A DNA stretch of 64,000 bases from NCBI GenBank assembly GCA_964035545.1, contig OZ037765.1, forward strand, positions 10,116,698-10,180,697, read 5' to 3'. The first letter of the stretch is position 1. Every line of letters starts with the position of its first letter. The stretch is from Bugula neritina (Eukaryota; Animalia; Bryozoa). Below the pieces are notes generated by a model. It was not told the origin of the DNA, searched no databases, and worked only from the letters and a program-made list of their open reading frames with translations. The position numbers and the translations under genes were made by a program. Shown here piece after piece: positions 7,548 through 48,400 of the stretch.

Positions 7548-7713
7548 CTACAATGAAAATAATGAAAGCATTATTTTTTTCATTTTTTGCCTAAATGTTC
7601 TTTTCATATAAAGATATATACATTTGAAGACAAAAATTTGTATTCTGTGCAAATAAAATGCAGCAGCAAATACTTGTTCAACATAATTTTATCTAAAATA
7701 CTTAGCAACTTAC

Positions 7714-7839
7714 ACTGTGTTCCAGTAAATGTGGTAAAATTTGGTACCAGATGATTTAATGTTCACAGATGGAGTAAACGTCCTTCAATACCAGTTCCTA
7801 CTGAAGTGTGACATGTCAAGTTTGCCGGGACTTTATATA
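7714..7839 (-). promoter_or_regulatory. Putative TATA box and non-coding first exon of the neuropeptide gene
   Basis: TATATAAA on the minus strand at 7839-7832, Inr-like TCAC/TCAGT around 7811-7800, and a gtaagt donor starting at 7713 that can splice to the acceptor at 7548-7549 next to the ATG. Confidence 0.55.
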
Positions 7840-10800
7840 CAAATGCTGCTTCCAGATAAATTAACTCATTATCATCTTAAATTAAGCTAATTATGCAAGG
7901 AGTGTGATGACTGATAACGTGTGCATTAACCATATGTCTTGTGGTATTCCAGCCATATACAACATAAAATACACTCTTATAGGCTGCCTTATAGTCACAG
8001 TAAACAAGTTTACTGCACGTCTCCCAGCTACCGTGTTGTTGTCCAATTGGCTAAACAACCGTTTGTATCTAAAAGTTGAGATCACTAATAGCATTGAATA
8101 TATTTATTATAATTTAAGTTTTGGGCTCTTTTTATTAAAACAATTCATGAACAGGCATAGCAAATAATTCTATGATTTAAATACATTCTATAAAATTTAT
8201 CTATTTAGCTACATGACTCATTTAGGATATTAGTAGAGTTTCACAGCAGTATTAAATAAATAAAAGTTTGAACCAATTAAAATGTCAATAACATTTTAGA
8301 TGATCATAAATATAAGTCAATTTTGTGTTTTAAAGTTACATGCATTTTGTTGAGTTTTTTTGTTTACTATTATCATCAAATATTTTAATTTTTAGTATGC
8401 ATTTAAAGCTAAATCTTTACAGTGTTGGTTAGTAATTTTCTTATTTGTGATCAAAGTTCACATTGACATGGTGCATGCAATTAAACATAAATCTTACTGC
8501 TTTCAGCAACTTCAAACCAAATAACTTGTCAACTTATTTCTGTAATTTGCGATTTTGCCATCTTAATTGTAAAGGAATAAAAAGAAGTTTAATAATTTTC
8601 TGTACATAATTATTATTCAACAGCAATAGATATCCTATCCAAACTGCCACAGTAAATATCTACATAAAACAATTTTTACACCCTCTTTTTATGCTAATTT
8701 TTTGATAATTATATTTCCTATGTTAACAGCAATATTTAGTTTAATATATTTAATATTATTAGTAACATTTATTTGTTGCTATCTTATTTGTTTTACATAA
8801 CTCTCTTTCAAAGCATACTTTTCTGACTTAGGAATAAAATTTATTCTAAGCAATCAGGAAATCATTGACAAAGTACAGTTGTCTTATTCATCCTGTATAC
8901 ATGTGTTAAAAGAAGCAAAGAATAAGCATGCCAGAATTATAGCCTGTTTTGTAACCACAGACTTTATTTTGAGGCCACTTCATTAGTGTGTGACAAGCAT
9001 TGTGTGTTCATTGTAAAGAATGATTTTAATCAATGAAAGTTTGTCATTTACAACAACTTTTCAATTAAATTAGGCCTAGTAGACCTGATTTCCTTATCAG
9101 TCCAGGTAATTTGCTCCAGGATAATTACCCCACAAACATTTTCCAAATTAATACACACTATTGTAACTGGGCGGAACAAATGTCAAAGTATTCCAAATTC
9201 ATTTCTCGTAAAGCCCAAACTTTGTCTTATTTGTTTCATCAACTTGGCCACTTAGGCTAAAGTACAGACGTCATTTAGCAAACAATTAAAAGTGGAAGTT
9301 AAAAAGATTATCAACATATTGGAAAATCTCAACTTTGGACTTTTCAATTAAAACCTGGTAAAGCCCTCAAACAAAGAGACTTCAAATTTTATCTGTTGCT
9401 ATGCAACTTTATTTTCACTAAGAAATAGTTACAATAATTATGCATAGCTTTTCAGCCAATTGAATTAGAACTTGGAATCTATCACTGGCAACATCTGTAT
9501 ATCACTAGCTTTATTGACTTTATGTAATGCGCAACTGCACAATAAATGAATGTTCATATTTTAGAAATCCTTCCCAATGTGCAATATTTTGATGTGTTAA
9601 CTCATTAAAACAGCAACAACTCCCACAACTCTGTTACTTTACAGACAAATATTAATTTTGTTTCCTTAACTATATGTTGGTTGTGATCAGCTCCTTTCGT
9701 TTGCTGTAAGCATATTTAAAAGTGTTTGTACACATGTTACTGATTACTATAAGTTATAATAGCAATGAGCTAACAATTTTATTTTAAGTATGTACTCTCA
9801 TTTTTTCTTAAGGAGAACGGATGCCTTGAGTAAAAATCTCACCGTCTGGTCACCTTTCACCGCCGTAGTCCTGCGCTGTGACGGGAATACGTGCACTAAA
9901 TAAGTACTATGGAACTGAAATTAATAAGTAATGCACATGAAAATACTCTTTAATAAAAATCAATGTATATTCATGAAGCTACATGTAAGTCATCTTTATT
10001 TGATGCCAAAATACATTTTATGAATAGTTTTCAAGCATAATATAGCAAAATCTTAAATTGCATAAAAATATAAATATAAATTCAATGCATATCTAGTAAA
10101 ACTAAACATTACTAGCTGCTGCTTATATATAGCATAACGAGTAAAAAATGAGCAGTAAAAGTATTATAAAATTGAACATTTTTTGAATATGTAAATGGTG
10201 TGCTGCGTTTGAATTAAGCTACAGTTAATAAAAAAGCAGATTTTATATCCATAAGTTATAACCATAACATCAAATATAGAAAACATGAAATGCAAGTACC
10301 TAGATATTGCACAAAATTTACCATTACCTAAAAGCACAGAAACAACTTACTAGACTAAGACCATTCGTCTACATATAGGTCCATAATCTTAGCATAGTTA
10401 GATTATATATTCAGCTATCATCAGAGAGAAGGTACCTTGAGAGAACTATGTTTACTCATTACCATTAAGTCACCACAGATTACCAGCCTAGCCATGGTGT
10501 CTGGTACTCAACGTCACGTAGTTACAGTGTAACTCAAAGCATTTATGGGGCTATAATACAGAACCCATCCTGAGTATTAAATATATTTGAAACTCTTAGT
10601 CTTAATGTGACACTGGCATTTCTGTATCTACAAAAAGAATTAGACATTTGACAATTCCAGGAGATAGTCAAAATGGCATTACCACTAATATTCATGCCAA
10701 CAATGCTACAACAAAGCACTTACAAAGCATAACATATTTTTAAACAAAAGGCATGCTAAAAATAGAAGTAACTTCGTTATTTACATTTTTATAAATGTCT

Positions 10801-14096: not shown

Positions 14097-17000
14097 TTGT
14101 TGTACAAGTATAAGAGACAGATTATGAGGATCACAGCATCAATGAACAAGACAATAGAACTTGCAATAATCAGCCACCAAATCCATTCATAGTTATACCA
14201 GTCTAGCCAGACTCTGGTTGCAGAAACAAGTGACTAGAAACAGAAACAGTGCTTCAACATATTATATACACCAGTTGTATTTTCATCAATTTTATTAACA
14301 ATTATCTATATGTGCAAGCAGCCGTGGTCTAGGGGTTGGATCGCTGGCTTAGTAAACCCGAAGTCATGGGTTCGATCCCCAGTAAAGGCCATTGGTGATG
14401 TTAGGAAGAGCATCCAGTCATAATTGCTCCTGTGCCCATCTGAATAAGTCCTTTCCATCAGGGCTTTCTCACAGAGATAGTGACTATAACTTTTGATTTT
14501 TTATATGTGTGGGTGCAATATGTACATACAGGTTTCTGGCAAAGTGTACGAGCACCATTAAACCAACTTTTAAAAACTGAAAACGGAATCACTAGTAAAA
14601 TAATTATGTTAGAAATGGCAGGAGAAGAATAGCAAAACAAAACTATAGAGTATACATAATTTGAGCTTATTTACTTCAAAATATGCAGCTTGGCAGGATA
14701 ATTTTATTGTGGTCAGACTTTGCAAATGGCAGACTGCAATTATTTAGAGTAGCACACATTAAAAGCACGGCTAATTATCTGCCCCCTTCTGTTGATAAGA
14801 TCAACTTCGTGCATTGAGGGAGCAAACTTCACCTTAAATTATTATTGTTTACAAAGTCTTACTTCAGCTGTTGGACCTGAAAAAGTAACGCCATATTTTC
14901 TATAGAGCTCAGCCTGTTTCTCACTGTATGTGCTGTACAGTATACTGCTCACAGTGCTGGCATCCACCAAGTTACCGTCTTTATCCAACACATACATATA
15001 CACATCCGTCCTGCAATGAAAATTATCAACAGTTCTGTCATCAAATAAGAATATGAGGAAAAAGAGCTCAAGGTGTCTGCATAGAATTCCGCATTAAAAC
15101 TGTAGCCACTTAAAAATAGAAACACATTTTATACAAGCATAAAATATTTAGTTACAATAAACTTGGTGCCATGTCTACAAATGTTACAGGAAATTGGTTA
15201 AAGGTTGGAGCACCTTATAAAGTAATTGCTAGAAAAATAACCTACTTGCAAAAGAGCTATAAACTCTGTAATAATTAATGAGAAGATAACCATTCAGTTA
15301 GTTTCACAGTTGTTTATAATATTTTCTGTTATCAAAGATTCCTACTTTGATCGAATTATTTTGTTTGTTAATTAGTTAGTGCAGTGCAACTACAGTGTAG
15401 TTGAAACTTAAATTATTGTTTTAAAAAAAGCTGAATAATATTTTCTGTAAAAATGACTTTGAGAATTGCTCGAAATATGGTAAACTCAGAGCCTTACTTG
15501 TTCTGGTAAGACTGTTGGGTATAAGGATCTTCGTGAAAAGATAAACGCTGTAGATGAAATGTGTAACCTTCGTGTATCTCTTCTAATTCTCTATAAAACA
15601 GAGTGACTATATACAGCGTGTTAATAAACCACTACATGCCTGCAGTATATGTTTTAGAGTTTAAACAGTCATATTTAATGTTATGAGTCCGGAAAGTATA
15701 AAAAATTAAAGACTAATATTTACTATTAATTAGAGGTTTCTTATAAGACTCACGTGAAAAATTCTTCTATGAAGGTTTGAACTTCATCCGGTGACTGGTC
15801 TATTACTAGAATCAGCTGCTGTGTTGGATTATTTATGTATACCTACAGTATAGTATATAGTATAGGTATATTGGGTATAATATATAGTATAGGTATATAG
15901 TATGTAGTATAGGTATATAGTATATAGTAGAGGTATATAGTATATAGTATAGGTATATAGTATATAGTATAGGTATATAGTATATAGTATATAGTATAGG
16001 TATATAGTATATGGTATAGGTATATAGTATATAGTATAGGTATATAGTATAGGTATATACTATATACCTATACTGCATACTTTATACCTATAGTATGCAT
16101 TGGAATGATAACAATGTTTGTTTTTATACCGTGTTAAAGATTTAGTGACATTAGTGAAGAGTAAATTTAAAACAGGTTTATTTTATTCTATCAAACTTGA
16201 AAAATAGTTGAACATTCTAATTGAGACATGTTATACTTTATGACATTGCATACCTTCAAAAAGCAATAGTCAAGGCATCTGTGCTATATTAAATTATCAT
16301 TACTATATTAACATATTATTTCAAATATCTAATATCTACTATATACAATATAATATGTTTTGAACTCTAGATAAATCGTATTGTATAGTTTGTTTTTACC
16401 ATTCCAGAAGATGTTTAGAAATTACTATTTCACAATAATAATCTTTTGACAGCTTGTCATTATTAGCTAGAATTTTACAAAGTTTGCATAAATTTGAATC
16501 ACATCTAAAAAAAATTAATTTAGATCTAAAGAAGGTGTGTGCCTACCTAAATAACAACTGTAGGGTTGCATACCCCTTCTTTAGAATTAAACAACAAGGT
16601 CTATTAAAATTTAATGCTATCAAAGTATTTAAAGTTTATAAATTGTACACCTTTAACAGACCACATAGAGAGAGAGTTGTAAAGTAACAAAATTACTGTA
16701 GCCGTGTTATATAAGTAACTTTCACTTACTGTCAGCACTAGGTCTGCGCTGTCAGAAGATGTTCTAGCTCTGATTCTGATCTCAAACCTGGCACCAATCA
16801 TTTTTAAGTAAGATGGCAAAGTGGTAGTAACCTACAAACACATGAAACATGTTTATAGTTAAAAAACTAATTCATAATTTAAACAGAGATAGAAATCATC
16901 TCAACTGTTGAGCTACTTAGTCTAGCTTTCTACGCCATATTCATTATCAATAATAAATTTTGAATTATTTTTGTTTTAATTGTTTTATAAAATTGTAAGT

Positions 17001-23000: not shown

Positions 23001-26000
23001 ATGAACGCAACGACCTCTCTGTTGAATGATAGCCTTGTCACAATCTCTCCGCTCTTTTCGTTTACTGAGAAACCATTCTGCAAAATTGAAATCGAAATTT
23101 AGAAAATTAAAATCATGCAGACTGATAAGTATTTAATAGAGTAACAAACATACTTTAAAGTTGTAATCCGATGTTGATGTCACAGGTCTGTTGAAGGAAT
23201 CCCTGGCTTCATAACTGCTAGAGTCAATACTAAATCTGAGTTCGCTGTCCTCATCCAAGTCGTACGCATTTACTTGAAGTACTTTAGAACCAACTGGGTC
23301 ATCTGCAACAGCAGCAACAATCAGTTTATTTCAAAGGTAAAAAGCAACATTAGAATACATATTACTAGACGCATGTGTCTCATACATCATACCTTCATTC
23401 ATATACTGGATATACAGCTGGTTGGAGAACTGGGGAAGTCTGTTGTTAACATCACTTAGAGTTATATTAACAAAAGTAGTGGCAGATCGTGTGGGCACGC
23501 CTCTATCTTCGGCTTTAATCTGTAAAATTCATATGTTACACAGAAGCTGCCCCGCTCTTAGCCTAGGGCCACACGGTGCGTATTTTCGCATGCGAAAATT
23601 GAAATCACAAGTAGCAAAGGTGTCCACTGTACGCGTTGAGAAAACATTCGCACTTGTCGCTCTGCATTTTCAACGCAAGTGCGAATCGTCTCTGTCGTCG
23701 TCACCTAATTGGCTGGTAGTTATTCAGCGAGCCCAATTTCTTTACTTTAGTGCTACATTCCAGTAAATTGCGTTTTATTGAAAGCGAGTGCGATTTAAAA
23801 ATGAATGCTTTATTTATCACGCATCACTGACGCTACAGTGGACACCTTTGCTACTCGTGATTTCAATTTTCGCATGCGAAAATACGCACAGTGTGGCCCT
23901 AGGCTTAGTATGAGCAAAGATATCAGGGTAATTTTTATACTAAATTCTTTGTGACATGCCTCGCAACTATAACCACATCAGCATTTTAGTTTTGAGAGTA
24001 TAAAATACTTTAGATCTTCAAAAAAGAAATAAATAGTCTCTATAAAAACACATTATGTTTAATTATGACCAACTACCATATTGAAGACTTAGACAATAAT
24101 GCTACAACTTTAGAATACTAACCAGAAAGCTACAAAAGGAGAGGGGAAACTAATAACCAAACCTGGAGAACAAACATGTTCTGAACATCATAGTTGAGTT
24201 CTGCCTTCACACTCAGTTCACCAGTATTAGGATTTAGGGCAAATTTTCCGGATTCGTCTCCACTTAGTATGCTATATATAACAATGCCGCCATCTTCGTC
24301 ATCACCGTCATCATCAGTGGCCGTGATCTCTAAGATAACCTCGCCTAATAACACAGAATAAGGTTCAAAAACAAACCCTATCAATAAAATACGAATTATT
24401 TACTCGCATAATTTCGAAAATGATAAATGACAATACTTATTAACAAAGCATTGTAAGCTTCTAAAGAGTGTTATTTTTATTTTTAGCAATTATCATCTCG
24501 TAATGGTAAAACTTATAATTGAGCTTAAAATGCAGACATTTTGGGTTATGATTGACTAACAACAGAGTTGTATTGAATAAACTATGAATGATGCATACAT
24601 ATACATGTATAATAAAAAAATAAGACTTGAGCAACTGATGAAAGTTTTTGTTAAAGAAAGTTGAGAATAGAGTACAGTTTAACATGAAGCCACAATATTT
24701 GCAAATAACTAATTGCATTGAATTTATGCTTTGAATTGATTTCTATATAGAAGCAAAACTACAACCTGTTATTGCCAAGCTAAAATATATTACCAACTCT
24801 AGTCTACATGCTTGATCCTGTCACATCTCAAAGAAGTAATACACAGTTATCATATCTTGGGAAAAAGTGCAAATGACATTATAACATGTCGACCTTTAAT
24901 GTACGGCATAATAATGCTATAAGTTATAAGTTATAACAGAATTTTAAGTATTTTTCAGCATTTGTAGTCAAAGTACACTAAACGCATTATATTACAAATA
25001 GAAATTTGCAGACTGTAAATAGTCTGAGAAACTTTCTACAAGTACAAAATGTTCAATATTTACCCACTGCTGTAGTTTCCGGAATAATTTTAGCATAGTT
25101 GTCTCTAAGGAATCTAGGTTTATAATCGTTATAGTCCTACAACAAACAAAATGTTGAAAAGTTTCTATTTACACTACACACAATTGTTCACAAATATACA
25201 TTTGGGCAGGGTAAAATCACTGCATAACAATAAAAATATACCAATCTAGAAAGCAAGTAAAGCTATGCGCAAAATTTTTATTATCATCTCATTTCAATTC
25301 ACTCCTTCACTCAAATTTTATAACATTTTAAAAATAAATAATTCACTTCAGAGTAAATCTATTGCAAAATTTTGAAATATTCAAGTTGAAATATCTATTA
25401 AAAGTTGCATATTAAGAGAATCAAAACATGTCTACATATCTCTGTGATTACAGAGAACTAACATCAGGTCACGGAAAAGAAGGTGGGTCTGGTAACAAAT
25501 TTCTGTTTCATAACAATGCACTTTCTGTATTGCAATGCAATTTAATATCTAAAAACAATATGATCTTGCAAGAGAGAAGATGAATCCACTAGTATTGAGT
25601 TACAACTTTCCTTACCAACAAATCTATGTACACATGAGCTGTATCATTCAATCTCCCATCCGATACCATTATTGTTAAATCAAACTGTCGGCCATCTTGC
25701 TTACTCAGAGCTCGTCTTAGTGTCAGCTGACCGTTAGTAGGGTGTAATTGGAATGCGTCATCTTCAGTATTACCAGCCATAATAGTGAATACAATTGACC
25801 TGGAGTCTGGATCTGTAGCCTGCAGTATAACAGTCATTACAATGACAATATGGCTGACAGAAGCCATAACAGTCAAGTATAATGCGCAGAAAATTATTTT
25901 GTGGTGAGTGTATAACATCTGCAATATTCGTGACTTTGAATTCGAATAAAAATGCTCAAGTTGTTAGCTACATGGCCAAAATTATTTTCTTATTCAGATG

Positions 26001-29000
26001 TATTTTGGTTTAGTGCTGAACATCTTACAAGATCAAAATTTTTGTCCTAGTTTTTTATTTAAAGTACAGGTTTTGTTTTTTTCAACTTTTTCAACTTGCA
26101 CTTTTCTGTAAACTTCATGTACATCAGAGGTGCATCACCTAAATCACTGAATGTCATTTAGTGAAAAAAATAAGAACAGAAGTTATTATTATCAACATTC
26201 AATTAAAAGTCCAAAAACCATCTTATTTTGTGAAACCTACCTAAAATATTCAACGTTGAATACTACACAAATACAATTGATGATCAGAAAATATAATAGT
26301 GTGAAGTAATTAAGTTGCAAAAATAATAGACTATAATATATAGTGGGGGTGCCAACATGCAAAAATGGGCGGGTGGAGCACATCAATACTAACCTTTGTT
26401 GCTATATATCACTGCAAAGCCAACATTCTACTGATCTCAGATCTGCAAGTACCTTTTTTGTATCTGGGGGGGTTCTCTCGTGAGAGGGGTGGATATACAG
26501 GGGTTCAGCATTTTTCAAGGGGCGACTATGGAACTCTAAATATTTAATTTTCTGAGTAGTTTAAGTTTGACATTAAAAATATTTTCAAGGAATGTTGTAC
26601 ACATATGAAACTTTCTCTAACAAAAGTTTTGACCAAAAACAAAAAAAGTGGGCGGAGCCTATAATATGACAAACTACTTTTTTGCATATACCGGATATTC
26701 TCTAAACTGCTACTTTTCTGTTCTAGCATTTAGAATGTTGATTTTTGGTATGGAAATACTCTATTGTGTTCTAATAATGCTCTCCGGTTTTCATTACATT
26801 CTGAACTATATAACATCTTTCCCAACCATGACAAATAAAAAACATAAAACGGGAGTTATCTCCTCCGTTATAAATTATTGCATTTCTACCCAATAATATT
26901 GCTCTTTGTTGATAGGAACAACATCAGCATGATAAAAATGTATTCTTAGTGTATTTATATTAGCTTATTGACTTATTTTGAATAATTTATTACGATCAAT
27001 ACTATTAAGTATTAATATTCAATATTTACTGTATAAATTGAGTGTCAGCAATAATTAACAGACCACTAATATTCGATTTTTTTATCCATAAGTATAGTAA
27101 CATAAAATATGGTTCATAAAAAAGTAATATTATGATTTCAGCATCACAAGCAATTACTATGCTCTTTTATATCAGATATTGGTAGACATTTGTAATTGTA
27201 TTTATTTATAAATAAGATAGTATTTAAAATTTTAATTTACAATAGATCAAGCTTTATTACAAAGTTTTGTTATCTCTAGCGTTTATATACCAAATTAAAT
27301 ATATTATAATTCTTCATCAGAACTGTGTTTGTTGCCATCATCATCATAATCAGGCTCTTTGTTTGAAAAAGAAGACTGGCCACTTTTGTTGTTGCAATCG
27401 AAACATTCACAAACAACCACAGCATTTCATCATCAGGCGCTTACATTTGCATGCTTTACTCTTACAGCCGGCTTTTTTGCATTTACATGCTCTTAAAATC
27501 ACATCTGCGTTGCTCTCAAAATCATATTTTATTGGGGTCAAGTTAGTATCCCAACTATGGTCAAAAATTTGCTGATGAAGTAAAATAGGTGTAAAAGCAA
27601 GTTGCCAAAGTGTAACTTGATAATTGGCTCGTTTCACGTGATGTTCTAGATAATTCCTACTAGGTGGTAGCTGTGCTTCACTGGAGACATTTTTTAAAGC
27701 CAATATTTTATATCTTGCTTTAGTGATATCATCATAGGCACCATATAGGTTGGAGACAAATCATTCACACTCTAAGTATGTTTCTTCTGATACTGGGGGA
27801 CCAATCATCAGAACCTAAAGACAGATTATAGCTTTCTTTTTCAAGTACCTCCAGAGCACGCTTTTTAGATATTCGGGAGATAGAACTTACTGAGTCACAA
27901 CCTGTAAGTGCATGGAGTGATAACAGATTCTTGAGAATTTTTTGTAGATTTTTTTGGCTGATTCAAAAAGAGATATATATCTTCTGTGACTCCCCATTCC
28001 AACGAAGATTACTACATCTTTTATTAGCCTGCTCAGTTAAAACATTACTAAGATGATGTTAAACGCAATAATAGCAACATCGGTATCTACTGATCTTATT
28101 ACTACCAAATCGTAATCACTCAGTGCATCAGCTGCGTGAAGGATTAATCTCGTGTCTGCTTCATCATGATTGGATTTCAATTTGTTACAATTTTAGCGAT
28201 AATGGTTTTGCAGAACACAGACTTCTTTGGCGCTATACACACTAAAAATGTACCAGCTGGAATTTTCTCAATATGTCTACTCCATGCACCTTCACTATGT
28301 AATCTACAAACTCATGTTTGTTGTGAATATTGCTCAGAAAAGCACTCCAGTTTTTAGGAACAGGCAGGTTGTTATGAATAATGGAAATAGAGCACATCTA
28401 TTGGGCACCCCGTCTAATACGCTCTTGTGCTTTATTTGATGTTTCAGAATACACGTCAAACACTACATCAATCTTTGTATATCCTTTGCCACATTCAAGA
28501 AATATTTCCAACATCTTCAGAGCATAGCTATAAAAAGTGCCTAATGTTTTTGTCGAGTGAAGTATGCACATACCATCAATAATGATCGATTTGTTGGTGG
28601 ACAGTTGACTATCATCATTGGAGACCCTGTTTCCAAAATATTTCTGTTACAAAATATGCAATTTGCATGTTTTTCTCATCTGTCCATTTTCAGTAAATAG
28701 AGCAAGAGGAATGGGACCAATTTCTTTCTCTAGAACTGTATGCAAATCTTTGTATTTTTGGCACTTATGAGAAGTTTAGCAAATGATATTTTAGGAACAT
28801 TTGGTTTAATGGCCGGTTGAAGTGATTTAGCCACAAAGTCAAAGGAAGGGATTTTAAGCCGGTGAATAGCAGTGTAAAATGGTTTTATTGTAATCAAAAG
28901 TCTATCTTGAAAAAACTTTTGAACCATTTCTCCTCCCTGAGCCATAGCAGTCACTATTGACAAGGAGGTCTCCGCATCGGGACTTACTCCAGTAGCAATA

Positions 29001-32000
29001 TTAATAAGTTCAGTTGAATTATTGCTAAACAACTTAACATCAAACTGCTACAATGTAAAAAGAATTGCTTGTATATCAATCTCATCCGTCATAGTTGTAA
29101 TGATTGTGTCTTCCTTGTGTAGTGTTGATGACTGTGAGGCTATTTGGCAAAAATCCTTTTGCAAAGAAAGCAGTTGGGCTCTGATATGACTAGTTAAGAA
29201 CCATTTTGTCCGAGCTTCTTCATGGTTGCTAATGCCAATAATGCCTCCAGATGTTTTACTGTCTCGGTTCAAAGTTTGCTGGAGCCATACCTGCAATTTT
29301 TTTTCCTGTCCTGTTTATGGTGAATGAACCCTTTGCAAACATTCCATAAACTTCTGGAGCAGATTCAGGCAAATTTAGCATATCAATAAGGTATATAGGC
29401 AGCCACCTTGAGTAGTTTGTGCAATCATACGCAAAAAATACTGGTAGCATTGCCTGCATACTGTCCAAATATAATTGCCAGTTGCCACTACGCTCAGCTC
29501 GAATAAATCCCAACATGGCTTCTACTGCATGAAGGTAGGAATTCCAGAACATTGAAAGGTTAGATTTTAATTTAGTATCAGAATCAAACTTTTTTATAGC
29601 AGTAGCAACTTTTTCTGCAACAGTGGTCCATTCACGCAAGTTATCATCAATAGAAATACGTATTATGAGACTCTAATGGGTCAGACTGATCATTTTCTTG
29701 AAGCCATTCCGAAAGAGATTTTAGTTTCTGCCTTGATATTGCCTCATACAAAATCTTGTGTGCCTGTACACCTCTGTTATAATGCTTACCGCATAGCACC
29801 TGTTTCACTGTAGCTTCAGAATATATATCACTGTGTACAAGAACTTGGGCGAGGCCGCTTGATTTTACCATTTTGCCAAGTGCTGCCATGTAATTCATCA
29901 AGATATGAAAACTGCCCACTCGAATTATTGTGTTTGAAAATTCAGTTGGTTTGTTCCATTGAATCTCTTTGGCAATCTTGTAGATAGCTTGGTCAAATGT
30001 AATTACTGAATGTTTCTGATTTAAAACTTTCATAGTTTTCTTTAGCTGCAGAAGGATTGTATAAATTGTTGATGGATCTGTTGATGGTGCATTAATCATT
30101 GGGCAATACCCAATGACTGATCTTTTATTATCTTCTGTGGCAACCAAATTTCTTACATTAAAGCTACTCCAGCTGGGGCAGTTATGTGTAGAAGGACTTA
30201 TATCCAATTGAAATAGTTTGATTGGGGCAAGTCTTGCCAATAGCCATGCTGTAGTTAGATTACATGAATCCTCAAGAGACTTTTTCATATTCAGCAATGT
30301 CTCTTGACTAAGTTTTGTGATAAAATATGATTTTGAGAGCAACGCAGATGTGATTTTAAGAGCATGTAAATGCAAAAAAGCCGGCTGTAAGAGTAAAGCA
30401 TGCAAATGTAAGCGCCTGATGATGAAATGCTGTGGTTGTTTGTGAATGTTTCGATTGCAACAACAAAAGTGGCCAGTCTTCTTTTTCAAACAAAGAGCCT
30501 GATTATGATGATGATGGCAACAAACACAGTTCTGATGAAGAATTATAATATATTTAATTTGGTATATAAACGCTAGAGATAACAAAACTTTGTAATAAAG
30601 CTTGATCTATTGTAAATTAAAATTTTAAATACTATCTTATTTATAAATAAATACAATTACAAATGTCTACCAATATCTGATATAAAAGAGCATAGTAATT
30701 GCTTGTGATGCTGAAATCATAATATTACTTTTTTATGAACCATATTTTATGTTACTATACTTATGGATAAAAAAATCGAATATTAGTGGTCTGTTAATTA
30801 TTGCTGACACTCAATTTATACAGTAAATATTGAATATTAATACTTAATAGTATTGATCGTAATAAATTATTCAAAATAAGTCAATAAGCTAATATAAATA
30901 CACTAAGAATACATTTTTATCATGCTGATGTTGTTCCTATCAACAAAGAGCAATATTATTGGGTAGAAATGCAATAATTTATAACGGAGGAGATAACTCC
31001 CGTTTTATGTTTTTTATTTGTCATGGTTGGGAAAGATGTTATATAGTTCAGAATGTAATGAAAACCGGAGAGCATTATTAGAACACAATAGAGTATTTCC
31101 ATACCAAAAATCAACATTCTAAATGCTAGAACAGAAAAGTAGCAGTTTAGAGAATATCCGGTATATGCAAAAAAGTAGTTTGTCATATTATAGGCTCCGC
31201 CCACTTTTTTTGTTTTTGGTCAAAACTTTTGTTAGAGAAAGTTTCATATGTGTACAACATTCCTTGAAAATATTTTTAATGTCAAACTTAAACTACTCAG
31301 AAAATTAAATATTTAGAGTTCCATAGTCGCCCCTTGAAAAATGCTGAACCCCTGTATATCCACCCCTCTCACGAGAGAACCCCCCCAGATACAAAAAAGG
31401 TACTTGCAGATCTGAGATCAGTAGAATGTTGGCTTTGCAGTGATATATAGCAACAAAGGTTAGTATTGATGTGCTCCACCCGCCCATTTTTGCATGTTGG
31501 CACCCCCACTAATAGACAGAGTCATACAATAAAACTCCCTCTAATGATTTAATTGAGACTATGAAACAAGCGTTTCAATGTTGCTACGTAACAATACAGC
31601 CACATTTTAGTCACATGGTGAACTTACCGTAACAATCACTGGCTCATTATTAAAGTTGGCTCGATTCTCGTAAACTGTGGCATTATAAATATGACTGTCA
31701 AACTTTGGCCTTTGAGGAAACTCATTAGTAAAGCTAAGGACCAGCTGAGATGTAGTGGATTTGCCTCCCCCATCAGTAACTATGAGCTCTACTTGATATG
31801 TAGCATCCATGTCATCTCTGGGGTGGGACGTCAGATATACTGTGCCTGACTCTTTATCTATGCGAACTCTGTTTAACAAATACTTTTTAAATATAAACTG
31901 ATTGAAGATTTCAAAGTATCAATTGTCTATGGTGAGATAATTCATAGGCGAAAGCATAGTTTATTTACAAATAGAATTGTTGTATGCAGAAAGGCACAGA

Positions 32001-35000
32001 TATTAAAGAAAAAGGTAACATGTTTCTTGTACTTTTATATAGTAATAAGACTTACAAGTTGGACGTCTGAATGATAGAGTAAGTCACACTTCCATATGAG
32101 CCACTATCTCTATCGGTTGCCTAAAATTCACCGTTTTAGATACTAATTAACGGCAGCAAAAAACATTATTTCTACAAAAGAGTTGACTAATATCTACAAT
32201 AGAGTAGTATGACAAGTGACTCTAAATCTTGTTTGAAGTTTAATTGCTTTTGCTCGTTACCCGACAAATAAAAATGTAGGTAATTACTATTATGGTCAGT
32301 GATATCACTATAATATGCAAAACAGTGCAACATTTAACCTCAAACACACAGCACAACATGTAGATTCATATACTGCACGCAATGTTATATAGTCTATAGA
32401 GTTTATACTATGCATTATTATGTATATACAGACATTATCACATGTTGAATGTTACATACATTAACAGTGATGATGGGTGAGTCAAGTGGGGTCTGTGGTG
32501 ATACTCTAACTGTATATACACCTTCATCAAAGTGAGGGAAATTGTCATTCTTGTCAATTAAATTGATCTCTATTGTAGCATTTCTAGTTAGTCGCTCATC
32601 CCCAGCTCTATCAGTTGCAGTAATCTGAGAATAGAGATCAAGTTGCATGCATACCTGTTCTTTAAAACATGAGATTTGTATAAGTCATGCAATAGTAATG
32701 CAACAGGATAGCAGCAATTAAGTGGAAATTCATAGTCCTACCTTAAACGTATAGCAACTATTTGACAGAGTATACAAAATGCACTTACAGTAAGCGAGAG
32801 TTGTCTGTACATTTCTTTCTCGTAGTCAATATTGGCTTCCTTTTTCACAGACAGCGAGAGCACCGCGCTGCCCGTACCAAATGTTGGTGTGAGCTGGAAG
32901 GTGTCGCTGCCAAACCCACTCATGCCAACATCAAATGCATTGTTTGGCTGCAATAGTTGCACACAACTATAAGAAGATCTAAATATGAGCTACTATAAGT
33001 TTTTTGATATGCAATAAAAGAACACAACTTCTAAATGAAGCAAAATGATTTTCTACTCACAAGTGGTGCAGATGTACAACATTTCTGGTGAATTTTTTTT
33101 AATATTACAGCACTTAAGAATGCATAACACTATGAAGACAAAAATAGCTTAAACACATGCACATGTATGACATTACATTATTCGCTTATTTAGCAAGCAC
33201 AACATACAGGTAAATCAATGTCTATGATGGATAAGAGAAAGCCGGGTAGGTTGGTGTTGACTCCAAGCCCTTCCACTACATTGAGGACAAGAGGCTCCAC
33301 CACCCTCATTTCATACTCTGAATCAGTATAGAACTCTGGTGCATTATCGTTGATGTCAAAGATTTGTACGTTAATGTGAGAAGTAGATATAGCAGACGGA
33401 TCAGGCTGTCCATTAGCCAACAGTTCCGACACCTGCAATATGATATGCATATACATTTTTTTTATTCTATTTGCTAGATTTGGTTACTACTTGTTACATT
33501 TAGTCACTGTTTGCTACATTTAGGTACTACTTGCGTTTTTTAGTTTATATACGTGTTTCAGCTGCATATAATAGTGCTTTAAATCTTTGAAGATGGCATG
33601 AATTTATGCCAAAATATTAGTTGACATACCTTTTGTAAAAAAGTCAGTTTTTAAAATATAAATCATAATTTTCAGAGTGCTTCCAGTAAAAAAAGAACCT
33701 ATCCATATTGATATAGTTCCATAAAAAATATGACTAATTTGCACTAACAAGGCTTTAAAGCAGCTGCAGTTGTTTAAATGTATATAATATGTTTAATGTG
33801 TTATGCTTTCAAATGTGTAAAAAATGCCATTTTTAAACATCTTTATATGATGAGATTTATGATTTTTAAATCTTTTCAAAAATCTGCCAAATGGAGACTT
33901 GGATAGAATTTGCGCTGAACTTACTTCAATAGCAACTGTGTAGACTGGCCTGTTGTGATACAATTCTCTATCAATCCTATTCTTTATGGTAAGATTACTT
34001 GTGAAGACTCCACTCTGGTTCCTCAAGGGTGTTAAACTCAGCCAATTCAAACTATCTATTAATATTGTAAAACTTGGTCATTGCAAAATGTTGAATCTAA
34101 TATATTTCCAGAAATGTTGTACAATATGAAGTAATGTCAAAACTTCAATTACTTTAATATACAGGAGAACATTGCCATTTGGTGCTACAATATGTATTTA
34201 AACAGAGTCATCTCACCATGCTATACTAATAGTGTAACTGTAATAGGCAAGTCAGTTAGTCTAAAATCTGACAGAATGTAAAGGTTTTCTAGTACTTTAA
34301 TAAATTGTAAATTGAGTTCTGCTTTTCATAAACATATAACCCCCAAAAACTGACCTAAAATCAACCCATTATTATTAAATTTAGCGCTGATAGTTTTAAT
34401 TTTGCGAGAAGTTTCTACATTATTTTTGTCAAATCAGTATAATTTTAGTAACTTTTCACATATGCAAGATATCATAAGATATATTAGTAGAAGGAATAGC
34501 AGTACCAACCGTTGAGCAGTCTGAGCTGTAAATTCCGAGGCGGTTGAACCTCCTTGTCTCCGTCCCTCACTGATATCACGTCTATGACTGTACCCTATGT
34601 TTCAAATGATAACACTAAACAGCCGCCTTATTAGACAATGAATTTACTTTACAATATGTTATAAATAACATCTTAATCTAATAATAGAGCACGTGGAGTT
34701 ACGAAGAGTTGTGTATTTTTATTTGTTAGAGATTGCAATAAAGCTACTACACCAATAAAGTTTTTAGTTCAATAAATTCTAGATCAACCATCCAGAAATA
34801 GTTTCAAATTGGAGAGCTTGAAAAAGCCCAAAATATAACTATCTATAATAGCAAGATACTGTCATGTGACTAAAACTCATTATGCAGTTTATTATTATAA
34901 AATTTCAGCTAGTTTTTATCATATTTAGTTTCTTTTCAACATCTTAAATAACACTGAGACAGCTTAGTGAAGCAAAACTGTGTAATAAAATTTTTCAAAC

Positions 35001-45400: not shown

Positions 45401-48400
45401 AATTTGACTCGTTTAGTAAAAACGAAATCTATCTCCGTTTAATTTAGTTTTTAATATTGCTTTGGCGAAGCTTCTTTTTGAAAATGAATTTAGATAATGT
45501 TCCTCTAAGAAATTACAATGTTTCCTTTATAGCTAAACATAGCAATGCTACTTTCAGGGTACATACGTACTTACTGTGAATGCTGAAGATGGAGATGAGA
45601 AGGATCAAAGACCTATAAGATATAGCATTATAGAAAGTTAGTTTTAACTTGGAGAGTTGTTAACTTTAAGAATTATATAACTATTTTTATACTTTAGAAA
45701 TCCCCTGTCATCTGGCACTTTTTGTCTTATTAGGAAGCTTGAGGTTTGGTGGCAAAAGATATGTGCAGCATAAAAACAAGTTTTATAATATATAACAACC
45801 ATTCTAATGCATTCTAAAATATTAATTTTTTGAACATTTTTCAGCATTATTGATTATATAAATTTATTTTGTACAAATATTGTGTAACTAGTTAAAAACA
45901 GCGAATATAAATTTTTCTTACTACGCGAAAATGGCTAGGCTAGGAAGGGCTTGAACATAATTTGTTTTCTGTGAGTAAGTTTAGGGATAACTAATAGGTT
46001 TTTTTTATTACTAATTTAGTTTTAAATTTCTACTGCAAAAAATGCGGTGTAAGAAAAAAAAAATTTGTTGTTGTTTCTTCCTAATTTTATTTTAGATCCA
46101 GGCGAGCTGTTTGCTATTGAAGCCGATACCGGAAAAATAACAACCACCAAGTCTCTAACTCTAAAAGCTGATGTGATTGGATCACAGGGTATCGTTACTC
46201 TAAAAGTAACTGTAAGTTTTCAACTTAATTTGTTTATGCTAGACTGCATAAAATTATAAAGCATTCTGTGTTATTGTTTTTATCCATCTTTCAAACTTTA
46301 GAGGTATGCTACAGTCAACTTAAAGACTGTTACATAATATTTATTAAAGTGCTTATAATTAATAGGTTATGCTATTAATTCGAGGAGACTCCCCTTAACA
46401 ATTTTATAATTTTGTTTTCATCAAGCCCTTAGCTCAATGACATTTATTTTCTCTGTCAATGCCTTCTTATTGCACACTACTCTGTTACGTATAAACCTGT
46501 TCAAGTGTGGGTTACTTTGGTCTAATCGTCACCAGGGTTATATACATGATTTTAGAATCAGGTTTATTTATGAAATAATTGTTTTGTGGTGTAATTTTTA
46601 GGCCCAAGAAGTTCTTTCAGACGGTAGATTAGGCAATGACTCTACCACCCAGTCATTTGCAGATGTAAAGATAACTATTATAGATGTCAATGACAATCCT
46701 CCTATGTTTACTCAAACACATTACTCGGTTAATATGTCCGAGTCTTTAGAGAATGGGCAGGCAATTCCCAACCTGACCATGCATGTTAGCGATGCAGATG
46801 GAGTGAGTAGTTAATATTTTTTATACATTTGAAATAACTGCAAATATCTATCTTCATCTTTAGAACAGCAGCCATTATATAGCTGGTTCAACAAAACCTG
46901 TCATAGTGGCCTTTATATAATTGTTCAACTCCTTGAAATATTTAGTCAATGTTTTTATAAACATTGTTGCTTTACAGTCACTTAAATCAACAACTGTATA
47001 ACTCCATATGTTTAGGCAGACAATGCGTACTTCAAGTTTGTGTTCTCTGGTCTGAGGGAATATGAGGACATATTTAGAGTGAGTCCACCAGAAGCTCAGG
47101 GCTCTACTACTGCCACCCTTGTTATACAAAATAGCTCGGCTTTAGACTACGACTTTGGTTTAAGGGTCTATACTTTGGAGGTACTACAAATTATAGTGTT
47201 TATTTATATAGAATTGACTGATGTTTATGTTTTTACTATACATATGATTGTATAAAATATTTAGCTGTTAAATTATTTTAGATGAATAATAAAAAATTTA
47301 ATGTCATGCAAGTTGTATTCATGCTTGTGTATTTTGTCCAGGTAATAGCTAAGGAAGTGCGCACACAATCTAGTCTCTCTAGCACTGCTATAGTTACCAT
47401 CTACCTGCAAGATGCTAATGATAATGTGCCAGAGTTTAGTGTGGGATATTATAACATAGAAGACTTGTCAGAACTGACACAGCCTGGTGAACGTATAGCC
47501 TACTTACCTCAGGTATCCTATAACCATATTGTGACACATGCACGCACACACCACACTCGCACACACCACACTCGCACGCACCACACTCACACGCACACGC
47601 GAACATGCACGCACACACACATATTTTTGCACACTGTTGCACATATTATGATTATATAAAAAAATATAAACCAGTATCAACAATAATAGTATTGTGACAT
47701 TGCCTAAATCATATAATTGTGCAACTCCAATTGTATTGGTGTGTGAATATAAAAACAAATTTAGTGTAATATTGTATAAGTTATTAGAAGGTGCTCAATG
47801 AAAGTATAAATGTAAGATTAAATATTAGAACATAGCTATTGGCTTATATTGCAGGCTACTGATGTAGACACAGGACCCTATGGTAGTGCAGGCATAGTGT
47901 ACTCACTGGTTGGATATGGCAATAATAGGTATGCAGTATAGATTTTCTCGCTTAGCTCTCCTACCAACACTGTTTGTTTTATCACCTAAAATTAATAATT
48001 TTCTTATATAATATCTACAGGTTTGAAGTGAATAGGCTAACTGGTGAGCTGAGGCTACAGGAATGCTCCGTACCAGGCACTGGGAACTGCTTAGATTTTG
48101 AGTCTATTCAGTTGTATAATCTCACATTGATTGCTACTGGTATGTGTTTAGAACTTTGGTATTGTAAGTTGACTTGAACTCTGTGCTTTGAATAGAAGTT
48201 GAATAGTAGGATTTTAGTGCCTGAATCATTTTAGTGCTTTTTAAATTCATGTAAAAAATGGCTTCATCTCGAGTATGTAGATGAATTAATTTTTTATTGT
48301 GTTGACTTTTAGGTGATGTTTTTGTTTTCTAGGTAGTTTTTTTAGTCATATAAATCATTCAAAAGAATTATAAAAATTGCATAGAAATTTGAACTTCTGT

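Follow-up and report, generated by a model that had tools for sequence, protein, structure and literature searches.

Organisation of the locus

The window analysed here, a stretch of 64,000 nucleotides from the bryozoan Bugula neritina (contig OZ037765.1, positions 10,116,698 to 10,180,697 of the forward strand), contains a predicted cadherin gene on the minus strand, one intron of which holds a 5.2-kb transposable element (26341-31511) in the same orientation as the gene. The features of the locus are listed in Table 1. Concerning the host gene, the upstream exon ends in ...GTT ACG at 31628, followed by gtaagt, while the downstream exon starts with GCT ACA GAT at 25819 and is preceded by ctgcag. 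The two exons join in phase 0 (...VIVT/ATDPDS). When the exons were searched singly, without a joined spliced model, the downstream one passed the cut-off for Pfam PF00028 (Cadherin; E 2.6e-8, 34.6 bits) and the match of the upstream one was weak; the acceptor of the upstream exon (31870-31869) is a prediction made from the sequence alone. Subtracting the element and a single copy of the target duplication would leave an intron of 634 nt. Both flanks of the insertion are single copy, and no allele lacking the insertion is present in the assembly.

The repeat search returned a sole inverted pair, 26341-27532 and 30320-31511, with arms of 1,192 nt that are 100% complementary and lie 2,787 nt apart. 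No direct repeat families were found within 24000-34000. A Foldback (FB)-type element was also considered and rejected, the arms being unique transposon sequence and not tandem subrepeats.

As for the content of the arms, the minus-strand arm carries the last 226 nt of a transposase coding sequence (read from 27532 to 27307), with a Cys-rich CXC block, an acidic tail and a stop codon at 27306-27304 that is mirrored at 30546-30548, and then a 3' untranslated stretch in which polyA-like hexamers are present (27258-26991). The inward-continuing reading frame begins exactly at 30319, and the copy has two 3' ends, with neither the N-terminal 452 codons nor the native 5' region. A preliminary description of this DNA had reported the arms with their coding tail, stop and 3' region, the break at 30319 with loss of the N-terminus and native 5' end, the matching ATA flanks and the in-phase joining of the host exons, and all of these were recovered here, the loss amounting to 452 codons and a 2.0-kb 5' region when compared with an intact relative.

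Table 1. Features of the element and its host gene, in window positions
Feature	Positions	Strand	Remarks
Downstream host exon, predicted (cadherin repeat)	25616..25819	-	starts ATDPDS; acceptor AG at 25821-25820
Host intron, 5,808 nt	25820..31627	-	from exon bounds
Target-site duplication, left copy (ATA)	26338..26340	.	same 3 bases at 31512-31514
Outer 634 nt of 3' arm, native terminal inverted repeat of the family	26341..26974	-	L062 arms
Native region adjoining the 3' end (coding tail, stop, 3' untranslated stretch)	26975..27532	-	collinear with full-length copy
Internal transposase gene remnant, frameshift-broken	27533..30319	-	codons 453 to about 1386 of intact frame
Sole novel junction of the derivative, 2-nt microhomology (AT)	30319..30320	.	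native sequence upstream of junction also ends ...AT
Inverted duplicate of 26975-27532	30320..30877	+	stands in for 2,001-bp native 5' region
Outer 634 nt of 5' arm, native terminal inverted repeat	30878..31511	+	comparison with L062
Target-site duplication, right copy (ATA)	31512..31514	.	matches left copy
Upstream host exon, predicted (cadherin repeat)	31628..31868	-	ends ...EPVIVT; donor GT at 31627-31626

Full-length relatives

An intact relative of 6,621 bp (L062:1626-8246) has an uninterrupted open frame of 1,462 codons, inverted arms (1626-2259 and 7613-8246) of 634 nt that are 98% complementary, and its own matching 3-bp target duplication on either side. With the 5' end of this relative, the window arm shares only its terminal 635 nt, and it is the duplicate at 30320..30877 that lengthens the inverted repeat from 634 to 1,192 nt. 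The native 5' region of 2,001 bp (L062:5612-7612) was found in four complete copies plus fragments; at the position of the junction, four loci have a different upstream sequence, and these are mutually 99% identical. Full-length copies are 99-100% alike. One of them (L062) was read from end to end and three others in part, and two full-length copies besides L062 have a frame that is open across all of the sequence examined. Compared with the intact relative, the frame of the window copy has ten frameshifting indels, four of which are shared with 12 to 15 of the 15 short copies and six of which are private. The arm itself holds one of the private indels, a 1-nt insertion lying after the Cys block and before the acidic tail.

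The genome carries an autonomous family with 634-nt ends and a 5.2-kb non-autonomous family with 1.19-kb ends, in a copy ratio of roughly 4 to 24. The preliminary description had considered that autonomous members might natively possess the 1.2-kb ends, including the coding tail, in which case there would be no rearrangement, and most genome copies do carry arms of that length. However, the inverted ends of full-length copies measure 634 nt, and the only copies with an intact frame have such arms and the distinct 2.0-kb 5' region, whereas every copy with 1.2-kb arms lacks the 452 codons and has shared frameshifts. That the long arms are native has, in our opinion, next to no probability.

Coding capacity and superfamily

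No Pfam family scored above its cut-offs, either with ten open pieces of the window copy, the broken transposase being searched in pieces without a mended frame, or with the intact 1,461-residue protein, and the sequence of the nuclease region matched none of the solved structures. At the structural level, the model of residues 1020-1345 of the intact relative (pLDDT 85) gave Foldseek matches to T5 flap endonuclease (E 4.8e-5), as well as to EXO1, XRN1/2, T4 RNase H and FEN-1. Homologues conserve the nuclease motifs HDEADTRL, SVDTDV and LTGCDS; those retrieved are proteins without a name, encoded by genomes of echinoderms, cnidarians and hemichordates. For the catalytic region (residues 351-799, pLDDT 83), Foldseek by itself was not significant; a wider structural scan gave the P element transposase (6p5a; Z 10.8 over 260 residues) as best match, followed by integrase cores, Hermes, Transib and Tn5, a likeness at fold level only. 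The best match is the P element and not an Academ transposase because, to our knowledge, no Academ structure has been solved.

For the parent protein, these models predict a DDE transposase region with an RNase H-like fold and a nuclease domain of the FEN/XPG type, in addition to which it has a Cys-rich CXC block at its C-terminus, and the remnant in the window would hold part of the catalytic region together with the nuclease domain. The window copy is devoid of the first conserved acidic block, which is probably catalytic. AcademX lineages encode a nuclease and generate 3-4-bp target duplications (PMC10045372), and Pfam offers no model for the RNase H-like domain of Academ (PMC5751038), which agrees with the absent Pfam match here. 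An RNase H-like region (at fold level), an XPG/FEN-type nuclease and a 3-bp target duplication were all found, and the name Academ-like (AcademX-type) is used for the family on the strength of its predicted architecture, fold and duplication length rather than of a direct comparison with Academ reference proteins.

Copy number and single origin of the short form

Matches to the window arm lie at 42 genomic positions, most of them paired convergently with a spacing of about 4 kb. The identical junction was found at at least 24 loci, distributed over 8 large contigs, and these copy counts are lower bounds, 40 of 154 arm candidates having been scored. Of the 15 complete short copies, 14 are bordered by a 3-bp target duplication of their own, the flanks differing from copy to copy, and in one (C6:12673299) the two sides do not match (TCT / ATA). 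In two short copies the interiors are identical and the target duplications differ, which shows very recent movement. Four frameshifts are common to the short copies (15/15, 15/15, 13/15 and 12/15). The tree places the full-length copies in one clade (support 100) and 21 short copies in another (support 95). The same junction, the shared frameshifts and the single short-copy clade together indicate that the rearrangement happened once.

The short form is thus a mobile non-autonomous family and not a unique locus: it possesses the termini of its autonomous partner, a dead frame, its own target duplications and several copies. Two readings suggested by the preliminary description are not borne out by these data, namely that the window holds a one-off, Mu killer-like locus, since the same junction is present at at least 24 loci with individual target duplications, and that it is a snapshot of a rearrangement at the window site, since the tree shows a single shared origin and then spread. 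Another explanation is that the second arm is a fold-back assembly artefact, absent from the real genome, as chimeric long reads can yield perfect, long, palindrome-like repeats. The recurrence of one architecture on 8 large contigs, each time with an individual 3-bp target duplication, speaks against it, as do ten private changes of the window copy that are present in both arms, since polishing with family reads would erase such changes and not create them. This explanation is close to refuted.

The element in the window very probably belongs to a long-armed, non-autonomous family derived from a cut-and-paste transposon of Academ-like (AcademX-type) kind, and for this family the following origin and spread can be proposed. 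In one ancestor, and once, synthesis copying the 5' inverted end would have switched to the identical 3' inverted end, most likely during repair of the gap left by excision, would then have run 558 nt inward, across the 3' untranslated region and the final 226 coding nucleotides, and would finally have jumped back to codon 453 at a 2-nt microhomology. Such a template switch, to which one junction with just 2 nt of microhomology points, would have deleted 2.0 kb, including the conserved acidic block, and lengthened the arms to 1,192 nt. Because the outermost 634 nt were already alike at both ends, the product would have kept both transposase-recognised termini. Full-length copies could then have moved the derivative in trans to at least 24 sites, one copy entering the 634-nt cadherin intron in gene orientation and duplicating ATA. 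The family would in this respect exemplify an ordinary process, a derivative formed by template switching between a transposon's own inverted ends and outnumbering its parent, and it is useful for the annotation of the families of the B. neritina genome.

Concerted evolution of the arms

The two arms evolve in concert. Outside the arm identity, the window copy is about 1.2% diverged from its nearest relatives, and its terminal branch predicts about 28.6 differences between the arms, vs. none observed. Ten private changes of this copy, absent from 30 other arms, are found in both arms, and none in one arm only. For the family as a whole, 52 private arm changes are paired vs. 86 single, and some copies have 19-25 arm differences and few paired changes; arm conversion is episodic. 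Gene conversion from arm to arm would keep the arms alike and would account for their 100% identity in spite of the divergence of about 1.2%.

The place of this conversion is a separate matter. The perfect identity could also mean that the insertion is very young and that the arms of its source copy were homogenised shortly before, with no conversion at the window locus itself. The family was recently active, as the two copies with identical interiors indicate, and, the flanks being single copy with no empty allele in the assembly, the insertion may be of any age. On the other hand, the ten private changes in both arms need arm-to-arm copying in either case, so that the place alone differs, and the six private frameshifts and the terminal branch of 1.2% point to an insertion of some age, provided that an unsampled source copy did not already carry them. 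A very young insertion is accordingly a serious possibility, but one that we hold to be somewhat less probable than not. Wherever the conversion took place, this family illustrates cleanly how the two arms of a mobile element evolve in concert.

A possible role in silencing

Host transcription across the element would let the intron fold into a 1.2-kb double-stranded stem. A Mu killer-like silencer could be built on such a stem, host read-through giving hairpin RNA and then small RNAs that silence the family in trans, either here or at all such loci. The arms do reach into the transposase gene, covering part of its coding sequence as well as the 3' untranslated stretch, and the element lies in a predicted intron in gene orientation. 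Furthermore, the genome encodes Piwi/Argonaute, a Dicer dimerisation domain and A_deamin (adenosine-deaminase) domains, and MuDR, Ac and Tc1 are silenced by hairpins that arise when inverted transposon sequence is read through (PMC3440606; bioRxiv 10.1101/2020.01.07.897926; PMC3878927). In the parent, the native inverted ends begin 320 nt past the stop codon, and all four polyA-like hexamers of this 320-nt gap precede them, so that only the stem of the derivative would surely match the mRNA.

Against such a silencer, the locus is not unique, at least 24 copies having the same architecture, and every copy, including the pair with identical interiors, transposed after the hairpin architecture existed. 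Moreover, the frame is complete and open in one full-length copy and open throughout the part examined in two others, these copies being 99-100% alike, and a search for an RdRP gene gave no match, the search control likewise giving none. Transposition of the family after the origin of the hairpin, together with the persistence of open full-length frames, argues against strong family-wide silencing of Mu killer strength, and we consider a silencer of this kind quite improbable.

A milder effect, also unlikely, would be that the at least 24 mobile copies, several of them in host genes, jointly supply hairpin small RNAs from many sites, as a source that spreads itself and throttles activity without abolishing it. 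If this were true, the family would be an animal counterpart of Mu killer amplified by the transposon family itself, in which arm-to-arm conversion would keep the stems perfect and the transposase mRNA would be matched by the extended arms but probably not by the native 634-nt ends. Should the extended arms feed silencing of the parent, they would provide a natural animal system for DNA transposons triggering their own repression.

Comparison with known systems

Ds and the internally deleted P elements are non-autonomous deletion derivatives that arise from abortive gap repair. The short form resembles them in its parental termini, its dead or missing transposase, its microhomology junction, its excess over the parent and its presumed movement in trans, but differs in that the loss of sequence came together with an inverted duplication, by which the arms became nearly twice as long. 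Large palindromes, such as those of the human Y chromosome, and plastid inverted repeats are known to undergo arm-to-arm gene conversion. As in these, the inverted arms are near-identical while the whole unit diverges from its relatives; the differences lie in the scale, 1.2 kb within a mobile element, and in the episodic character of the conversion.

With the AcademX lineage, the family shares cut-and-paste movement, inverted ends, a large protein with predicted RNase H-like and XPG/FEN-type regions, and 3-bp target duplications (PMC10045372, PMC5751038). As regards maize Mu killer, this is an inverted duplication of the terminal repeat and part of the transposase gene that can be read from an outside promoter (PMC3440606), and the present element is likewise an inverted duplication with a terminal repeat and part of the transposase, placed where an outside promoter could read through. 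Mu killer, however, is a single immobile locus in which the mudrA 5' end is duplicated, with demonstrated hairpin RNA and MuDR silencing, whereas here the 3' end is duplicated, the structure is itself mobile, with at least 24 loci and its own target duplications instead of a single rearranged locus, and the family stayed active.

In Ac/Ds composite insertions, aberrant events at transposon ends lead to inverted duplications that can be transcribed to double-stranded RNA (bioRxiv 10.1101/2020.01.07.897926). These are locus-bound and involve two nearby elements and re-replication, in contrast to the clean, single-junction, transposing derivative with both termini described here. Finally, read-through transcripts of Tc1 in C. 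elegans fold on the inverted ends and feed RNAi (PMC3878927), and in principle any copy of the present family inside a gene would similarly give fold-back transcripts that feed RNAi; the ends of Tc1 are short and native, whereas the putative stem here is 1.2 kb long and reaches into coding sequence.

Structure of the element and its host intron

A repeat search between 24 and 34 kb of the window found a single inverted repeat, whose two arms are 100% complementary, and no direct repeat families. The termini of the element are TAGTGGGGG... and ...CCCCCACTA, with ATA on either flank. The left arm, read on the minus strand, contains the last part of a long frame: a Cys-rich CKCKK...C block, then an acidic tail, and a stop codon that is mirrored in the other arm. 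The inward-running transposase frame begins exactly at position 30319, adjoining the second arm. The arms, both stop codons, the start of the frame and the flanks all lie where the preliminary description had placed them, and its statement that the arms include the 3' coding end of the transposase holds. In addition to the frameshifts shared with other copies, the window copy has six private ones, one of them a 1-nt insertion within an arm. In a single measurement, CpG observed/expected was 0.36 in the interior, 0.52 in the arms and 0.45-0.59 in the flanks (5 kb on each side); the low interior value is possibly a trace of methylation-driven decay of the element body.

The element and the host gene have the same orientation. 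On the minus strand, the upstream exon ends with ...GAG CCA GTG ATT GTT ACG, followed by gtaagt, and the downstream exon starts with GCT ACA GAT CCA GAC after ctgcag. The predicted join, ...EPVIVT|ATDPDS, is in phase 0. The intron is 5,808 nt long, or 634 nt once the element and one copy of the duplication are subtracted. With exons scored singly against Pfam, the downstream exon exceeds the Cadherin cut-off (E 2.6e-8); on the same strand, additional open exons matching cadherin are found at ca. 37, 24, 20 and 17.5 kb of the window, those at 24 and 20 kb also passing the cut-off. Between cadherin exons, a tandem repeat with three open frames and YIPILYT-like units is probably an intronic minisatellite. 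Elsewhere in the window, a GT/GC-rich simple repeat gives Cys/Val runs in two minus-strand frames.

Coordinates of the window copy, its surroundings and related copies of the same assembly (G000)
Feature	Position	Size	Remark
Inverted arms	26341-27532 / 30320-31511	1,192 nt each	spacer 2,787 nt
Element interior	27533-30319		
Transposase stop codon / mirror	27306-27304 / 30546-30548		
Mirrored private changes (examples)	26523/31329, 26988/30864, 27492/30360		
End of upstream exon	31628		minus strand
Start of downstream exon	25819		minus strand
Tandem repeat	15832-16081		minus strand
GT/GC-rich simple repeat	47439-47794		
Full-length copy (L062)	L062:1626-8246 = G000:C82:421625-428245	6,621 bp	read end to end
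Copy with mismatched flanks (L015, L043)	G000:C6:12673299-12680286		TCT vs. ATA
Deletion derivative (L027)	G000:C6:12707701-12711891		
Deletion derivative (L030)	G000:C2:7697603-7702677		
Truncated copy (L057)	G000:C1:4095375-4099076		
Rearranged copy (L065/L059)	G000:C2:14625000-14634999		

The full-length parent and its class

Upstream of the junction (30319/30320), four loci have another sequence, 99% alike among them (C82:425 kb, C3:19.74 Mb, C9:4.66 Mb and C1:19.31 Mb). Of these full-length loci, L062 was read end to end and the others in part. The L062 copy is flanked by CTA duplications and has 634-nt arms (98%), a single uninterrupted frame of 1,462 codons, and 320 nt between its stop codon and the start of the 3' inverted end. 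The window arm matches its 5' end over the outer 635 nt only, so that arms of 1.2 kb are not native to the family, and the preliminary description was right that they are more than TIRs. It had also rightly regarded the native 5' end and the N-terminus as absent: the first 452 codons, including a conserved AAADNxD block, are missing from the window copy. The 2,001 nt separating the 5' inverted end from the junction point are present in the genome in four complete copies, besides a few fragments. The frames of two other full-length copies, at C3:19.74 Mb and at C9:4.66 Mb, stay open across all 1,191 codons covered, and that of a third is interrupted; the family may still be active.

A Pfam search of the intact protein gave no match, in agreement with PMC5751038, according to which Pfam lacks a counterpart of the RNase H-like domain of Academ. 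Homologues with 23-51% identity are unnamed proteins of Holothuria, Actinostola and Ptychodera, among others, a few of which contain the CXC domain PF03638. In structure searches, the model of residues 351-799 (pLDDT 83) matched best the P element transposase (Z 10.8 over 260 residues), with integrase cores, Hermes and Transib well below, and that of residues 1020-1345 (pLDDT 85) matched T5 flap endonuclease, EXO1, XRN1/2, T4 RNase H and FEN-1. Both modelled folds and the 3-bp duplications agree with the nuclease partner and 3-4-bp duplications described for AcademX (PMC10045372). The family would thus fit the name "Academ-like", based on modelled folds and duplication length rather than on comparison with curated Academ proteins.

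Distribution and spread of the short copies

The arm has at least 42 matching places in the 216-Mb genome (97-99% identity), mostly as convergent pairs ca. 4 kb apart, and the 720 nt just interior to the junction have 30 at full or near-full length; since 40 of 154 arm candidates were scored, copy counts are lower bounds. The arm/interior junction is identical at no fewer than 24 loci, and the reading of the insertion as a unique, special locus is therefore not supported.

Fifteen complete short copies (5.10-5.19 kb) were extracted, 14 of them with perfect 3-bp target duplications in differing flanks (TAT, ATA, AGA, ACT, CTA, TTA, TTG, TAA, TGA and AGC). The only one with mismatched flanks could result from recombination between two copies or from a flank deletion. 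L027 and L030 have facing arms that are much closer together or truncated (arm matches 1-883 and 1-964); both represent additional deletion derivatives and may be arm-only elements. L057 is truncated 16 nt interior to the junction, with a GATGA-type microsatellite where the arm is expected.

Two 2-nt frame-breaking insertions are common to 15/15 complete short copies, a 1-nt deletion to 13/15 and a 4-nt insertion to 12/15. In a tree built on the 2.2 kb following the junction, a clade of the four full-length copies (support 100) stands apart from one that unites the 21 short copies included (support 95). Two short copies have identical interiors at different locations with different target duplications. 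Judging from these shared frameshifts, the short-copy clade, the individual target duplications and the identical pair, the rearrangement had one origin, and its product, already dead, has been transposing, also recently; it would rely on protein supplied in trans. As a transposon derivative the window copy is of an ordinary kind, and it is cleanly resolved. Outside the short-copy clade branches the rearranged copy L065/L059, with ca. 90-150 nt of native 5' region beside the junction, then an inverted 160-nt piece, and no 5' inverted end within 4.2 kb.

Origin and concerted evolution of the long arms

The derivative contains only one novel junction, and AT precedes CACAAAAC both in the native upstream sequence and in the inverted 3' sequence. 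Along the simplest path, a strand synthesised over the 5' inverted end would re-pair with the identical 3' inverted end, copying would continue inward for 558 nt, and the strand would return to codon 453 through the AT microhomology. Falling within the 634-nt repeat, the first switch would be traceless, and the product would retain two working termini because the ends were symmetrical beforehand. Such switching is the usual type of error in gap repair following excision.

With a terminal branch of 0.012, ca. 28.6 differences between the arms of the window copy are expected under independent decay, vs. none observed. Each of its 10 private changes (eight substitutions and two single-base insertions) is mirrored in both arms and absent from 30 other arms examined. 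As a mutation arises in a single arm, these pairs require arm-to-arm copying, either at the window locus or in a source copy. Polishing errors would draw arms toward the family consensus and would not produce such pairs; together with the recurrence at 24 or more loci, the paired states exclude an assembly artefact for practical purposes. Over 14 copies, 52 private changes are paired vs. 86 in one arm, and some copies are little homogenised (e.g. C6:4657575, with 25 arm differences), so conversion is episodic. This concerted evolution is a modest extra beyond an ordinary derivative.

Comparison with silencing loci

The preliminary description proposed, as one of several possibilities, that a read-through hairpin from the long arms may silence the family, as Mu killer does in maize. 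PolyA-like hexamers lie 45-312 nt past the stop, ahead of the native inverted end, and the extended arms, perhaps unlike native ends, would therefore match mature transposase mRNA, a weak point in favour in a genome of 67% A+T. Several Piwi/Argonaute genes are present in the genome, as are coding sequences for a Dicer dimerisation domain and for adenosine-deaminase domains. A search for RdRP gave no hit, nor did its control. Strong silencing is, however, opposed by the copies themselves: all 24 or more with the hairpin architecture were made by transposition after it existed, some moved very recently, and the full-length copies stay open and nearly identical. The special-locus form of the proposal is not supported, and the likeness stands only in outline: both Mu killer and the window copy, the latter in a predicted intron, are inverted duplications with part of a transposase gene, open to read-through from an outside promoter (PMC3440606), and comparable cases are Ac (bioRxiv 10.1101/2020.01.07.897926) and Tc1 (PMC3878927).
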